From the sequence record NC_047815.1: DNA of 64,000 bases; one strand, given 5' to 3'. Below are positions 4,749 through 19,202 of this stretch, piece by piece; the stretch's first letter is position 1, and the number at the start of each line of letters is the position of its first letter. The translations under genes were made by a program, and so were the position numbers. Below the pieces are notes generated by a model. It searched no databases, was not told the DNA's origin, and worked only from the letters and a program-made list of their open reading frames with translations.

Positions 4749-6182
4749 TTACGTTTTCTCCGCTTGCGCAACGATATCCGTATTATGTACCAGAACGTCA
4801 CCAACGTAATAACAATCATAAGGCTCAACGTCTATGTCAACTGTCATGACCTGCTCATAGATGCGCTCGACTTCGTACACAAGAACAGGGCCTTTACGCC
4901 CAGCAACCTTCATGCCTCGACGAACATCACGCGCTGGTACATATCGCCACACAGTGTCGTTTACCAGTATTGGATGCTCATGCGTGAATCGCTGACCGTT
5001 GATCAAGTAGTAGTGGTCTTCTTGACCGTAGCGCAAGGCACGCACAGCAGCATGTTCGTTGTGACCACGCAGCGATTTGCTTGTGTAGTCACGGAACTCT
5101 TTGGGCTGTTCTGTACGAGCAAGCAAGCTATCACCTACTACAAGTTCTTCGACACGACGATCACCCAGCACGGTCTCAACTACGGAGCCGAACACGATAC
5201 AGCCAGATTGAACACCTTGAGGGTTACGTGCAACAAAGGTGATTGTGGCAGTAGCAGTAGCTGTGGGGCGACTTGTTTGACCTAGGTCAGTTACAACACA
5301 GGTAATCTTGCCTGTAAGTATCTTCTCAGAACCAGGTTCAACACGACCATCAAACTTAATCTGAACCGTGCTGGTGGTGTCATCTGCAATAGAGATATTC
5401 TCCATCTTGCTGATTGACCACTTGTACTTGTAGCCACCACGACCGCCACGCACGTTGACAGGCAAGTAAGCTAGGGCATTAAACAAGTCACTTCCCTGCA
5501 CCGATCGCTGTCCAACCATACTGACGTTTGAAGCACTAGCACTCAGTGTTTGAATCGTAGGCAGTGCAGGAGCAGGAGTACCTGCCGCTGTTGGATAAAG
5601 CCACGCAAACACACGACTGTCTGTTGGAACAACTGTTGATACTACGGCTGTTTCAATAGGAGCGGGCCCAGTAGGACCCGTTGCACCAGCAATACAGCTC
5701 GGACCATCATTGCCCCGTGGCCCTAAAGGACCAGTAGTGCCAGTAGCACCAGTCGGGCCTTTTCGTCCTACGGGGCCGGGATAACCAGGATAACCAGGCG
5801 GTCCTTGCTCACCATCTTCACCATCTGTACCATCTGTACCATCGAGACCCCGATTGCCAGAACCGCCTTCGCAGCCACTGACACCAGTTTCTCCGTCACG
5901 ACCATCACGTCCGTCACGACCAGTAGCGCCCGGCGCTCCTCGCTGACCGGGCTTACCTTCACCAAAGCTCGCTATAGTAGGTAGGCCACTGACTTCGACA
6001 ACTTCACCGTTCAGTTTGATGAACGTCAACACGCCGTTAGCACTAGAAAACTTTATCTTGGCTATCTGCGTTTGTGTCTGCAAGTCAGTGGTTTCAAACT
6101 GTAGCGTACCATCTGATGCAATGGCTTCTTTACCACTATCGTTAACATCTGTTGAGATCTGAGTGATACTCAAAGTTGTCAT
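4749..6182 (-). CDS. Collagen-like fibre protein A with Ig-like domain and C-terminal Hint (intein-like) domain
   Basis: 33 GXY triplets, a beta-sandwich-like segment, then C328-IVFGSVV...THEHP...VLVHN467-T. Confidence 0.85.
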   Translation of the reverse strand: MTTLSITQISTDVNDSGKEAIASDGTLQFETTDLQTQTQIAKIKFSSANGVLTFIKLNGEVVEVSGLPTIASFGEGKPGQRGAPGATGRDGRDGRDGETGVSGCEGGSGNRGLDGTDGTDGEDGEQGPPGYPGYPGPVGRKGPTGATGTTGPLGPRGNDGPSCIAGATGPTGPAPIETAVVSTVVPTDSRVFAWLYPTAAGTPAPALPTIQTLSASASNVSMVGQRSVQGSDLFNALAYLPVNVRGGRGGYKYKWSISKMENISIADDTTSTVQIKFDGRVEPGSEKILTGKITCVVTDLGQTSRPTATATATITFVARNPQGVQSGCIVFGSVVETVLGDRRVEELVVGDSLLARTEQPKEFRDYTSKSLRGHNEHAAVRALRYGQEDHYYLINGQRFTHEHPILVNDTVWRYVPARDVRRGMKVAGRKGPVLVYEVERIYEQVMTVDIDVEPYDCYYVGDVLVHNTDIVAQAEKT

Positions 6183-15286: not shown

Positions 15287-15288
15287 AG

Positions 15289-15417
15289 TTAATTTCCTTT
15301 CTTTGCAGGAATCTTTGGTCCCTTAGCTGGCACAAAATTCAATGAACCTAACTGAGGCTTTTCACCTCTTAGCATTCTAAGATAGTTTCGCTTTGCAAGA
15401 TCTGAGAGTCTTGTCAT
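15289..15417 (-). CDS. Small basic protein (42 aa, not in ORF track)
   Basis: AGGAGA-ttggtc-ATG; MTRLSDLAKRNYLRMLRGEKPQLGSLNFVPAKGPKIPAKKGN*; preceded by the TAATTT motif; stop 2 nt before the PAAR start. Confidence 0.55.
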   Translation of the reverse strand: MTRLSDLAKRNYLRMLRGEKPQLGSLNFVPAKGPKIPAKKGN

Positions 15418-15471
15418 GACCAATCTCCTATGTCGATAGCACAAAATTACTCAGAACAGGCCCATAGACGC

Positions 15472-15498
15472 AAAAATGGGCGACCGAAGTCACCCATT
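15472..15498 (-). terminator. Intrinsic terminator with UUCG loop
   Basis: ATGGGTGAC-TTCG-GTCGCCCAT-TTTT on the minus strand, including a G.U pair. Confidence 0.85.
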
Positions 15499-15684
15499 AT
15501 GCCCGACGCTACTTGTTGCTGTTGCGTGTTTGTCTTTAGCAGAACACTATGTGACTAGCTAGTCCCGCCATCGCATCGCAATCAACAACGTCTGCCGTCA
15601 CGGTTTCACACACTCGCCCGTCGGCGCTCTAAAAGTGAAGTAACGGCATTGCTGTGTATTGTCAGAATCAACATGCTCAATGTA

Positions 15685-15846: not shown

Positions 15847-15927
15847 GAAATCTCCTGGTGCTGGTTGTTGTAGCAATTGCTACAATTCTTATTTACAGAT
15901 TAATCGTCAAAGAACCAATCGTTCATT

Positions 15928-16122: not shown

Positions 16123-16315
16123 CTTTCTTCTCTAATGCAGCACGCACCAGACAATCTTTTGCTTCAAGCAGCTTGCGTAGACCAGCAGACTTTTCAGCAC
16201 CGTCAGGCAGGTCGTTGTCCATCTGACGTGCAAGGTCACCAATCGGTTTGGACACAGCTTGCAGACGTTCAGGAAGATGTTCGTAATCAAAATACTTGAT
16301 GATAGGACTAGACAT
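16115..16315 (-). CDS. Small helical-hairpin protein (66 aa), candidate nucleotide-signal sponge-like fold
   Basis: MSSPIIKYFDYEHLPERLQ...LPDGAEKSAGLRKLLEAKDCLVRAA; true start taken as the ATG at 16315, which overlaps the upstream stop (ATGTCTAG). Confidence 0.7.
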   Translation of the reverse strand: MSSPIIKYFDYEHLPERLQAVSKPIGDLARQMDNDLPDGAEKSAGLRKLLEAKDCLVRAALEKKDG

Positions 16316-16718
16316 TGCTTGCCTCCACAGTTTTAAGAAATTTATCCCGTGCACCAACAAGATAGTGCAGACCAAAATACTTATCAACACGTTCAGGAAG
16401 TTCATCAAGACCGGATACAAACGCGCTGATCGCTTCTGTTGTTGCCTGTGCCTTATCGTCAACCGCACTTAGACCAGCAACAATTTCCTTACAGTCATTA
16501 GCAGCAAGGTTGTCAGCATCACTGCGAGTAGCACAGTGCCACAGTTGATTACGTGACCACAATACACGGCGCAGGATTTCGTTAACTGTTTGCGTGTCAG
16601 CATCTACAGGCAGTTCATCCACAATTGCTTGTGCAATACGCAGCGTAGGTTCAACAATCTTTTGTTGAATGTCCTCAGGCACATCGCCTTGAGTTTCGAA
16701 CATCGATAAATCAATCAT
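16308..16718 (-). CDS. Tandem double helical-hairpin protein (136 aa), paralog of the downstream 66-aa gene
   Basis: GAGG RBS; both halves align by eye to the 66-aa protein. Confidence 0.7.
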   Translation of the reverse strand: MIDLSMFETQGDVPEDIQQKIVEPTLRIAQAIVDELPVDADTQTVNEILRRVLWSRNQLWHCATRSDADNLAANDCKEIVAGLSAVDDKAQATTEAISAFVSGLDELPERVDKYFGLHYLVGARDKFLKTVEASNV

Positions 16719-16739
16719 GATAGCCTCAATGTGGTGTCA

Positions 16740-17345
16740 ACCCGATGCACACTCAAGGGTGAAAGCCCGAATGCGCACCAGGTTGTCTTTCCAACTGTAT
16801 AGGATTTCACAGCCCCCGTCTCCCCTCTGAGATAGGTCTAGCTGCTTTCAGTGCCTGCGTGAGGTTGAAGTATCGGCCGATAGAAAAACGATAACAAAAA
16901 GCTCGGCTCTACGTACACGCATCACATCCTGCGGGCGTTATTCACTGATTAAGCGCATAGCAAGATTCTATGAATGACTACTAACTGGAATCTTGCGTCT
17001 CGGTGTGCGCCCCGCTAACCACCGTGAATTATGGCACACACTAGTCTCTCCTAGCAGTCCGGTCAAGCGAGTGTTCCCGTCTCCCCACTGAGATAGGTCT
17101 AACATGCTGCCTGTTTTAGAACACGCCCTAATCACAAGACCCGGGAAGAATCTTGCGACGGAGTTCGGACGTTAATACCTGTGGCCGTTATTTATCTCAC
17201 ATTTCAAGAGCAATTCAGCCATCGTCGAATGCACACGCGCCTTGCTCACCACTAGAGAGCGCGAAACATCTGGAAGTTAAAGACCGACGGCTGCGGCGAG
17301 TAGTCCTGTCAGGACAACTTAGAAAAACACGAGTGCTTTGCTAAA
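16740..17345 (-). ncRNA. Candidate large structured non-coding RNA or long structured leader (~600 nt)
   Basis: No credible ORF; at least seven stems, four with G.U pairs that work only on the minus strand; internal 26-nt duplication. Confidence 0.55.
16815..17101. repeat. 26-nt direct repeat (25/26 identical) at 16815-16840 and 17076-17101
   Basis: cccgtctcccc(t/a)ctgagataggtcta read directly from the sequence. Confidence 0.95.
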
Positions 17346-17387
17346 CTGTCTCTGCTATACAATTAATATTTACAGATTTTTAGCAAA

Positions 17388-17425
17388 AGAAAAGGGGCAA
17401 AGAAAATATTTATTTTCCGCCCCTA
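17388..17425 (-). terminator. Intrinsic terminator after the 590-aa gene
   Basis: AGGGGC-G-GAAAATA-AA-TATTTTC-TTT-GCCCCT-TTTCTTTT on the minus strand. Confidence 0.8.
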
Positions 17426-17429
17426 ATGA

Positions 17430-19202
17430 TTAGAATACTTTCTTGCGTCGAACGTTAGAATACAGAACATCATACGGAGCACCGTACAGTTCTGGACCAC
17501 GCTGCGCACGTACTGTTACCATGCCAGTATGAATATTCACAGCAGTGATTTCAACTGTAGGCTGCTTAGGCTTAACAGTCTCATAGCCAGGAGCGTTCAT
17601 TGCAGGCAGTTCATCTTGCAGCAACTGAATCGACTCAAGCTGGGCAGCAGTAGGCTTAGGCAGTTTGAGTTTGATTTCTGCAATCTTACGACCACGTGCT
17701 GTAGGCAGGCGAATATTTGCCACGCCCTGCTGTTGCAGATACGCACTGATACGACGAGCACCAGCAACAACGCGGTTGTAGAGTTCGTCAGTCATCACAG
17801 CAGAGGTAAAGCGAATACCATCAGCAGGCTGTTGTTCAGCAAGATGCAGACCCGTAACAAAGAAGCCTTCCGAGATATTACGCAGCAACAGTTTCTGAAT
17901 GTCGTTGGTGTTAATATCGATAGCAGGTATTTCGAGGTCAGGGGCACCTACAGCAGGCTCAACGTATTCAGGAACTTCACCGTCATCACCAGCTACGCGC
18001 ATTTCAACTGTTTGTGCTTGTGGGTAGGTTGCACGCAGCAGACCCGTAGCGCGAATCACTACACTGCCACCTTTAGCGAGATTGTACAGCTCATCGCTGG
18101 TGGTTGTTTCAAACAGGAAGTAGTCAACAGGGCTAGTCATCGCGGTGATTGTCTGACGCGCACGGTCCTGTACTTCGGCAGCAGTCTTGCCAAACACGAT
18201 ACGACTACGGTTAGGCTGACTTGGACTTACAGGAAAGAATGCACCATACACAGCGGCAAGCGTTTCAGCACGACGTGGTGAAGGCTGCTTGAATTTAACA
18301 GGCTGTGCATTCTCAAGAGCAGGCAGCTTAACGCCTACTTGACGTCCTTTAGCAATCGCTTTAGGCAAGTTCTGCGGCTTGACTGAGGACAGCAGTTTGG
18401 CAAGATCGCTAGCATCAAGAATCTTTTCCAGAGGCACAACAAGGTTCTGCGCAAGATAGTGACGCTTGCGGAACATATAGATGGTTGTGTCTTTCTTGAC
18501 TGCGATAGGGTTTGCCATGTTGCGAGCAACACCACCAACAGGAGTGAACGTGTTGTTCTTGTCTGCACCGACTGAACCGAATTCAGCAGGGAAATCAGAC
18601 TGACCAGCAATGTTCATTGCACGCAAGTGACCACGAATGATAAACTTAATCTTGGGTTCATCTTTCATTACCAGTTCGTAGCGATCACGATTCAGGTAGG
18701 TCATGCTGTACTGTTCGCCTTTACTAAGCTCCAGCTCGTATTCATCGTGGGCATCTTCGATGTTAACACGACGACCGTTATACGTAGCCCATTTGCGTGC
18801 AGCACTCATTGAAGCAGCAAGCAGACTTGATGCAACCGAGTTAGCTGTTTCAGCATACGCTAAGGCCGCTGTCAGCAGTTGGCTACGGTCAACGATAGGT
18901 AGTGGTTCACGCTGTCCGTGCAAGGTTACGTCTACAGCATTTGAAGCAGACATAAACACTGACTTGCCATCATCACGGGTACCTGCAAACTGCATACCTG
19001 TCAGACGACTAATGGTTGCTGCACTAACGCTCGGCAGACGTACAATGTCACCTGGAGCAAATTCATGGATTTCACCATCACGCCAAACAAAAGCACTGCG
19101 TGAGCTTAGTCCAATAAAGGTATTGTGTACGCGTTGTACACTTCTTGGGTCAATGCACAGGTCACGCACAAGGCGATTGCTTTCTTTTTTAATCAAAGCC
19201 AT
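17430..19202 (-). CDS. Hypothetical (probable virion/head) protein, 590 aa
   Basis: Long ORF carrying copies of a ~65-aa module shared with three other proteins in the window. Confidence 0.7.
   Translation of the reverse strand: MALIKKESNRLVRDLCIDPRSVQRVHNTFIGLSSRSAFVWRDGEIHEFAPGDIVRLPSVSAATISRLTGMQFAGTRDDGKSVFMSASNAVDVTLHGQREPLPIVDRSQLLTAALAYAETANSVASSLLAASMSAARKWATYNGRRVNIEDAHDEYELELSKGEQYSMTYLNRDRYELVMKDEPKIKFIIRGHLRAMNIAGQSDFPAEFGSVGADKNNTFTPVGGVARNMANPIAVKKDTTIYMFRKRHYLAQNLVVPLEKILDASDLAKLLSSVKPQNLPKAIAKGRQVGVKLPALENAQPVKFKQPSPRRAETLAAVYGAFFPVSPSQPNRSRIVFGKTAAEVQDRARQTITAMTSPVDYFLFETTTSDELYNLAKGGSVVIRATGLLRATYPQAQTVEMRVAGDDGEVPEYVEPAVGAPDLEIPAIDINTNDIQKLLLRNISEGFFVTGLHLAEQQPADGIRFTSAVMTDELYNRVVAGARRISAYLQQQGVANIRLPTARGRKIAEIKLKLPKPTAAQLESIQLLQDELPAMNAPGYETVKPKQPTVEITAVNIHTGMVTVRAQRGPELYGAPYDVLYSNVRRKKVF

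Follow-up and report, generated by a model that had tools for sequence, protein, structure and literature searches.

The 64,000-nucleotide (nt) stretch of sequence record NC_047815.1 analysed here, hereafter the window, belongs to the Erwinia phage vB_EamM_Yoloswag (KY448244; window positions equal record positions minus 62000) and contains, between the genes gp113 and gp112, a gap of 711 nt (16719-17429). The gap is the largest stretch of the window without an open reading frame (ORF) of at least 80 amino acids (aa), the runner-up being 15287-15658. All the genes around it are encoded on the minus strand, and the locus sits among baseplate genes, not at the genome end. An original prediction, made from the letters of the sequence alone, had described this gap as the largest non-coding one in the window and as the seat of a structured RNA of about 600 nt read from the minus strand. 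Both descriptions are upheld, and in a comparison with related phages the structured body extends over ~630 nt. The features of the locus are listed in Table 1.

The syntenic gap was gathered from ~25 related jumbo phages and metagenomic contigs. At the DNA level only the phage pEa_SNUABM_5 matches the gap, and homologues of the neighbouring protein gp113 are present in 57 deposited phage records, belonging to phages of Erwinia (Alexandravirus, Sasquatchvirus, Snuvirus, Rivsvirus) and Dickeya (AD1, Salmondvirus) and to one Yersinia phage. In all 11 relatives that were opened (10 with a gp113 of ~45-52% identity, and SNUABM_5 at 63%), a poorly annotated gap of 1.3-2.4 kb separates the gp113 homologue from the PAAR spike gene. 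Further contigs were obtained from IMG/VR by a gp113 profile search and 8 more from a large protein database; individual relative loci are designated below by L numbers. Alignment A5 consists of 11 sequences of the Yoloswag sub-clade aligned with MAFFT.

Table 1. Features of the gp113-gp112 locus in window coordinates
Feature	Position	Strand	Description
gp113	17430-19202	minus	590 aa, Pfam KMPT-N domain (PF20294)
gp113 intrinsic terminator	17385-17423	minus	G+C-rich stem arms 17413-17423 and 17394-17406, then U tract
P box (AAATCTGTAAATATTAATT)	17361-17379	minus	19 nt, AT-rich; after gp113 terminator, before RNA body
Structured RNA body	16732-17360	minus	~630 nt; A5 with RNAalifold, covariation statistics, no conserved ORF
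5' domain	17216-17293	minus	P1 17285-17293/17216-17224 enclosing P2 17258-17263/17236-17241
Module a pseudoknot	17181-17252	minus	both helices covary
Helix X	17248-17252 (P2 loop) with M2-a 17181-17185	minus	covaries
Helix Y	17242-17247 with 17208-17213	minus	covaries
Helix P3	17168-17173/17122-17127	minus	closes variable hairpin 17133-17156; conserved joiner 17113-17121 next
M1-a	17062-17114 (core 17071-17106)	minus	covariance model R1 57.9 bits, E 1.7e-14
Module b X/Y counterpart	16931-17015	minus	GCGG 17012-17015 pairs with CCGC of M2-b 16931-16934
Module b helix	16916-16925/16851-16861	minus	conserved AU/AGG internal loop; encloses variable hairpin 16876-16907 (Yoloswag)
M1-b	16801-16853 (core 16810-16844)	minus	covariance model R1 47 bits, E 3e-11
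3' domain	16732-16795	minus	invariant ACAGUUGGAAAGACAAC, long hairpin 16738-16785, ACACCA tail 16732-16737
gp112	16308-16718	minus	gene next 3' of the RNA gap
Second P box	15884-15901	minus	just upstream of small membrane-protein gene gp109

Comparative evidence for a minus-strand RNA

Consensus folding of A5 with RNAalifold yielded 97 consensus pairs. When these are read in the minus-strand sense, 96.1% of the cells are standard pairs, as compared to 83.7% on the complement, and there are 143 G.U cells in this sense but 11 when the plus strand is read. The original prediction had argued for a minus-strand RNA from the G.U pairs of its stems, and the asymmetry is borne out over the entire consensus. 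Compensatory changes are observed in 32 of the pairs, whereas 500 shuffles of the partners average 17 ± 2.3 with a maximum of 23, and slid controls, in which the partners were moved by 1-3 columns, give 4-12; covariation, which had been recommended as a check along with the prediction, thus exceeds both controls. The sister clade (Alexandra, AD1, the SNUABM phages and Y3) carries a larger RNA of ~1.0-1.1 kb with 225 consensus pairs, 109 of which are compensatory against 56 ± 4 in the controls, with 94% standard pairing on the sense strand and 81% on the opposite strand. Two independent sub-clades thus show strong covariation. As the variable helices are misaligned by MAFFT, several of them were re-checked by anchoring on conserved motifs.

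A conserved small ORF, which had been put forward as a possible counter-explanation, was also looked for. No ORF is conserved in position across the 11 sequences of A5; a 1-nt indel lies inside the best-conserved block, and the indels are not multiples of three, so that the frame is broken. The gap very probably encodes a selected RNA structure. A deposited 46-aa ORF (pEaSNUABM5_00121, L002 5983-6123) and two automatic gene calls (L062 5337-5927 and L064 5380-5895) run over the conserved 3' hairpin or M1-b; as this region has no conserved frame, they probably reflect errors of annotation.

Domain architecture of the RNA

In the minus-strand sense the RNA is organised as two tandem homologous modules of ~250 nt each, with a long hairpin at the 3' end. 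Common to both modules are a long-range X/Y helix, which forms a pseudoknot in module a, a variable hairpin closed by a helix, joiners that are single-stranded and conserved, and a bulged hairpin termed M1. The number of M1-bearing modules varies from one to three among the relatives, whose RNAs reach ~1.1 kb; bulged M1 hairpins number two in Yoloswag and none to three elsewhere, the Alexandravirus-type RNAs having a different hairpin at the equivalent place.

The stems of the original prediction are all present in the sequence on direct reading, and six of eight find support in the comparative data. The remaining two, 17119-17124/17071-17076 and 17033-17039/17005-17011, are not conserved and represent coincidences specific to Yoloswag, their 3' arms belonging to covarying helices. 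A further hairpin placed near 17300-17318 does exist (17303-17315) but falls in the variable 5' region.

The M1 hairpin was recognised through repeats. A 26-nt block occurs twice, 261 nt apart, in copies that are 96% identical, and a 15-nt block occurs twice, 250 nt apart; the core of the 26-nt block has 2 occurrences in the window against 0.00 expected by chance. This block is the core of M1, which comprises a flank helix of 5-12 base pairs (bp), an AGA bulge, a conserved 8-bp stem and a 6-nt loop A-R-N-N-G-G, with loop and bulge invariant. Both M1 hairpins are comparatively supported, and neither had been singled out in the original prediction. Over 29 non-identical instances, both sides change in 8/8 pairs of the flank helix, whose covariation score of 0.509 compares with 0.186 ± 0.019 for shuffles (0/500 as high) and at most 0.166 for slid controls, and position 6 of the stem is found as C-G, U-A, G.U, A-U and U.G. 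Across the window the M1 covariance model matches these two copies and has no other match below E = 3, and a search for the near-exact core gave no further copy in the Yoloswag genome.

The elements of module a follow one another as P1/P2, the X/Y pseudoknot, the joiner UUGAAAUGUGAG..AAC, P3 with its hairpin, a second joiner and M1-a. P1, a predicted stem, has its own contiguous pairing of 6-10 bp in 10/10 distinct close relatives, different in sequence in most of them, as judged by a best-match search without chance control in which SNU5 and L032 are weak or wobble-rich. P2, predicted as a hairpin at 17236-17263, pairs by means of nine different stem sequences in the motif-anchored check. Helix X, the partner of which is the first AAC..CC.CAG motif, is represented by GUGGU/GCCAC, AUAGGU/GCCUAU, CAGAC/GUCUG and AUGGGU/GCCCAU, and helix Y by GAGCAA/UUGCUC, GACGUU/AACGUC and GAGCGUU/AACGCUC. 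P3 shows compensatory changes at RNAalifold columns 370-374/416-420. The hairpin that it closes, predicted at 17132-17158, is absent from the RNAalifold consensus, and a reading of A5 supports it in that the stem sequence differs in most relatives.

Module b begins with the GCGG/CCGC pairing that encloses a helix and a hairpin, and continues with the joiner UUAAUCAGUGAAUAAC, the helix 16916-16925/16851-16861 and M1-b. The GCGG/CCGC pair is nearly invariant and is hence weakly tested by covariation. Inside it, the helix 17006-17011/16951-16957 closes the predicted hairpin 16988-16996/16960-16968, for which there is comparative support; module b is further supported by columns 385-394/451-456 and 474-477 of a three-sequence RNAalifold consensus and by A5 columns 570-576/634-640, which carry compensatory changes. 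The helix preceding M1-b has three stem sequences (in Yoloswag, SNUABM_5 and L032) around the same internal loop on hand reading, and its inner hairpin has, in several relatives, a conserved CCCUUAA loop on differing stems according to a reading of A5. This 7-nt loop recurs on differing stems in L002, L015, L036, L062, L063, L065, L066 and the Alexandravirus loci. Its position varies between clades: Salmondvirus has it on the 3' hairpin, whereas most members of the Yoloswag clade, Yoloswag itself excepted, have it within module b. It may serve as a tertiary-contact or kissing-loop motif.

The 3' domain ends 4 nt before the ribosome-binding site of gp112, GAGG (16724-16727). Its hairpin had been predicted as a 9-bp stem at 16746-16777; the stem is real, but its extent is about 17+3 bp, and relative L067 shows five double compensatory changes in it. 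The clades of Salmondvirus, L036 and L038 likewise have a hairpin here, but with another sequence. A hairpin predicted at 16780-16796, a GUUG/CAAC mini-hairpin at 16782-16795, was rejected as unsupported, its G varying uncompensated in L036 and L038; this stretch more plausibly contributes the 5' side to the base of the 3' hairpin. A pairing of the P box with an ACAG before the 3' domain, proposed by RNAalifold, was likewise discarded as spurious, as it consists of 4 invariant pairs only and the second P box has no such partner.

Putative transcription signals and distribution of the family

The intrinsic terminator of gp113 is kept in all 11 close relatives, and in L067 its stem sequence differs with most pairs retained. 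The P box between this terminator and the RNA body (AATCTGTAAATA..AATT) has two copies only in the window and is found at equivalent places in the relatives. A copy stands directly after the gp113 stop or terminator in every examined relative except L036, which has copies only ~600 nt and 1.5 kb downstream, and the match is exact or, in L024 and L066, has one mismatch. L067 carries tandem copies, at 4830 and 4937 on its plus strand, 107 nt apart at the start of the RNA. The second P box lies far downstream of the RNA in most relatives with inserted genes, though not in L065 or in L066, a contig that is cut; that the box immediately precedes the membrane-protein gene was verified for Yoloswag only. 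A scan of IMG/VR for the P box gave no per-genome count, chance matches predominating among the matches listed. The core of the box, TGTAAATA, differs by one base from the T4 late-promoter octamer. The phage group has been reported to encode its own sigma-70-family factor (PMC7412058), and it is therefore plausible that the P box is a phage-specific promoter.

The ORF that follows the RNA differs among the clades. Homologues of gp112 are restricted, among deposited phages, to Yoloswag and SNUABM_5, and the other clades have unrelated ORFs after the RNA or directly the small membrane-protein ORF; the RNA motifs persist regardless. In Y3 and L067, on direct reading, the RNA runs into a small hydrophobic ORF similar to gp109 and no second P box is present downstream. 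The ORF of Y3 (L007 6272-6418, plus strand) is unannotated, has a gp109-like N-terminus (8/15 identical, E 1e-4 in a single comparison) and is situated after the RNA and before a terminator; that of L067 starts at ~5640. In Yoloswag a strong terminator follows gp109. The P box, the RNA, optional cargo ORFs, the membrane-protein gene and the terminator would thus constitute one small operon.

Searches of Rfam 15 (4227 models) with the whole window gave no match at the gathering score, including GOLLD (RF01998) and ROOL (RF03087), and at E≤10 nothing was found inside the RNA body within 16500-17600; the original prediction had likewise named no matching family. Two chance-level matches at E≤10 fall at the gp113 terminator and stop (17383-17479), one at the terminator to ctRNA_p42d (17.8 bits, where the gathering score is 50) and the other to a small nucleolar RNA model at the stop. 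Seven whole relative loci searched at E≤5 gave three weak matches (mir-70, PhrS and CrcZ), all outside the RNA. Rfam 15 also gave no match to OLE, HEARO, raiA, phi29 pRNA, 6S, transfer-messenger RNA (tmRNA), RNase P, group I or II introns or known ribozymes, and ARAGORN found no transfer RNA (tRNA) or tmRNA in the window. A tRNA-like structure was rejected on the absence of an ARAGORN cloverleaf and on the M1 covariation, which fits an 8-bp stem with a 6-nt loop and not a D-arm register. Short tandem RNA repeats of ~30-40 nt, as in type III antitoxins or CRISPR-like arrays, were also rejected, Tandem Repeats Finder reporting none and the two motif copies being 261 nt apart, and a CsrA/RsmA sponge was dropped as no obvious enrichment of GGA in loops was apparent by eye, uncounted.

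Pattern scans for M1 in viral contigs returned this clade only; in metagenomes they returned 14 loci, 3 of them genuine and 11 chance GC-rich matches, and in 185,579 cellular genomes (one per species) the 8 matches were all due to chance. On the basis of these scans the RNA family appears to be limited to a single clade of jumbo phages of Enterobacterales. A search of the literature brought up no description of the RNA.

Two other conserved stretches lie further downstream on the minus strand. At 15291-15416, just upstream of the PAAR spike gene, there is a 41-codon ORF with a good ribosome-binding site that has no gene in the Yoloswag record; SNUABM_5 has a 41-aa gene there, and calls of 41-42 aa are present on most fetched contigs. 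After gp109, ~240 nt of non-coding sequence (15445-15684) contain conserved blocks with 74-98% identity to relatives, the perfect palindrome GACUAGCUAGUC and a nearly invariant terminator with its downstream sequence; the equivalent gap reaches ~500-600 nt in some relatives. This stretch may be a second conserved RNA or regulatory region.

Functional interpretation and known large RNAs

The best explanation for the locus is a discrete, highly structured non-coding RNA of ~630 nt, which would be the founding example of an undescribed RNA family. Whether such an RNA acts by itself, alone or as a ribonucleoprotein, or as a leader of the genes that follow is a closer question, on which the sequence comparisons lean modestly towards the stand-alone form. 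The RNA is conserved across clades with unrelated downstream ORFs; its size and number of pairs are in the range of ribonucleoprotein and scaffold RNAs; its most invariant parts are the single-stranded joiners and a bulged hairpin with the shape of a docking site; and the copy number of the module varies. Its own transcription signals, namely an upstream terminator and a locus-specific P box, lend further support. Transcription would start at the P box after the gp113 terminator, and the RNA would be made as the first part of the small operon. The long 3' hairpin could act as a processing or stabilising element, separating the RNA from the downstream messenger RNA (mRNA) or stabilising it against it. 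Most likely the RNA would serve as a folded scaffold, the invariant bulged hairpins and joiners of which bind a phage or host protein.

The first candidate for a binding partner is gp113, the KMPT-N protein, because it always adjoins the RNA and, among the phages sampled, is confined to the clade that carries the RNA. A stronger version, in which a modular pseudoknotted RNA class with variable copies of a ~250-nt module forms an essential ribonucleoprotein with gp113, each module binding a protein or ligand, is tentative and on balance doubtful. If true, it would represent a phage RNA machine without a counterpart among the described RNA families.

Several observations weigh against an independently acting structured RNA of this kind. 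The choice of gp113 is a guess, and the protein offers no informative structural or sequence match: PHROGs lists it as of unknown function, NCBIfam gives no match, Pfam gives KMPT-N only, a PDB sequence search gives none, and the AlphaFold model (mean predicted local distance difference test, pLDDT, 74.8) has no Foldseek match in PDB at E≤0.001. No canonical sigma-70 site is predicted in the gap, and the P box does not resemble one. There is no terminator between the RNA and gp112, the ribosome-binding site of which follows so closely upon the structure, and co-transcription as a leader is hence the simplest model of the transcript. Most of the helices in the variable regions were aligned by hand or with simple scripts and not with a structure-aware aligner. 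Lastly, single-sequence folding energy is not better than that of dinucleotide shuffles, an outcome that the original prediction had named as speaking against it: the two halves give z = -1.25 and +0.30 (200 shuffles each) and the full length z = -2.49, from 20 shuffles only, while the plus strand gives z = -0.37, -0.82 and +0.02. The case for structure accordingly rests on covariation. The folding energies were not taken as refuting it, because the comparative evidence is strong and strand-specific and because pseudoknotted and long-range helices are invisible to a minimum-free-energy model.

The main rival, although an unlikely one, is a giant cis-acting leader, in which tandem sensor modules, as riboswitches or protein-responsive attenuators, would control the downstream genes and ultimately gp109. 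In Yoloswag and in the other clades alike only a few nt, and no terminator, separate the end of the structure from the ribosome-binding site of an ORF, and in Y3 and L067, the two loci where this was read directly, the RNA leads into the small membrane-protein ORF itself; in loci with inserted genes a further P box is usually present well downstream of the RNA, and the tandem homologous modules recall tandem aptamers. However, at 0.6-1.1 kb and up to ~225 pairs the RNA is far larger than known leaders, and the ORFs immediately downstream are unrelated between clades, so that the genes to be regulated are neither the same nor related. The membrane-protein gene of the Yoloswag clade is provided with a P box of its own and would have no need of a leader. 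The analysis showed no alternative pairing by which the ribosome-binding site would be sequestered, and an expression platform with mutually exclusive pairings was not noticed in the alignments, in which no systematic search for one was made.

An anti-defence or host-takeover decoy, in which M1 would mimic a D-arm and titrate a host RNA-binding or tRNA-targeting factor, is improbable. Jumbo phages commonly carry counter-defence functions, the M1 hairpin is repeated with invariant loop and bulge, and its core presumably resembles the D-arm sequences of bacterial tRNAs. Against this stand the negative ARAGORN result, the 8-bp stem and 6-nt loop to which the covariation points in place of a D-arm register, the other 500 nt, which a decoy leaves unexplained, and the Alexandravirus-type relatives, which lack M1 altogether.

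An element acting at the level of DNA, such as a replication origin, a packaging site or a protein-binding array, might account for the two exact repeats of 22-26 bp that lie 261 bp apart and for the conservation of the AT-rich P box, but is very improbable, as the pairing depends strongly on the strand, G.U being confined to the sense strand, the stems change in sequence yet keep their pairing, which duplex DNA sites do not require, and no anomaly of base composition or skew is present. That the gap holds unannotated small protein genes, or chance stems in a decaying region, is scarcely credible: the ORFs of 31-63 aa in Yoloswag, the 46-aa annotation over the 3' hairpin in SNUABM_5 and the unremarkable z-scores are outweighed by the absence of any ORF keeping its position or frame in 11 relatives, by the 1-nt indel in the best-conserved block and by covariation that exceeds all the controls.

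To our knowledge, only a handful of bacterial and phage non-coding RNAs longer than 500 nt have been described (OLE, GOLLD, ROOL, HEARO, raiA and a few others), and each of these large RNAs opened new biology, including ribonucleoprotein assemblies and RNA cages. The family described here occurs in cultured phages that are lytic on laboratory hosts (Yoloswag, Y3, Alexandra, AD1 and the JA phages), in which it can be deleted, tagged and purified. The tandem modules with their variable copy number provide natural dissection points, and the presence of pseudoknots in the modules and of invariant joiners points to a defined fold in three dimensions that should lend itself to cryo-electron microscopy. 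The annotation is also corrected, as several deposited or automatic ORFs overlap the RNA.

Known systems resemble the Yoloswag-type RNA in different respects. Tandem riboswitch aptamers, such as those for glycine, and long 5' leaders share with it two homologous modules in series upstream of a ribosome-binding site; here, however, the modules are ~250 nt long and partly pseudoknotted, and the downstream genes are not conserved between clades. M1, with its helix, 3-nt bulge, conserved upper stem and 6-nt loop in one to three copies, is comparable to TAR of the human immunodeficiency virus (HIV), phage boxB and put of HK022, a bulged hairpin of this type being a typical protein docking site on nascent phage RNA, but it has no sequence similarity to these and is embedded in a much larger fold. 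The long imperfect 3' hairpin between units of a polycistronic transcript is reminiscent of the RNase III processing hairpins of T7 early RNA. The pRNA of phi29 is likewise a structural RNA encoded by a phage, but the Rfam pRNA model does not match and the present locus is not at the genome end. OLE and HEARO (the omega RNA of IscB) are large bacterial ribonucleoprotein RNAs with dedicated neighbouring proteins, a partnership that adjacency and co-distribution among the sampled phages would suggest for gp113 as well; unlike them, the Yoloswag-type RNA has no Rfam match and no OapA/B/C, IscB or TnpB-type gene nearby, its neighbours being gp113 and small ORFs.

The closest parallels in kind are GOLLD and ROOL, to which the original prediction had also compared its candidate. 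Like these, the RNA is longer than 500 nt, has many helices, is borne by phages or prophages, is known by covariation and has no known biochemical function. The analogy holds for the kind of RNA and does not extend to homology, as neither model matches in sequence or structure. GOLLD is frequently found beside tRNA genes in phage genomes, whereas ARAGORN finds no tRNA gene neighbours in the 64-kb window; the Yoloswag-type RNA occurs in Enterobacterales jumbo phages at the head of a predicted mRNA, and it is built as a tandem repeat of one to three homologous modules in place of the single asymmetric fold of GOLLD and ROOL. With more than 400 nt, many covarying helices on one strand and no conserved frame, it has the general attributes of a large structured non-coding RNA. 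Judged from its sequence and that of its relatives, it represents a putative new RNA family, comparable in general kind to GOLLD and ROOL without being related to either.

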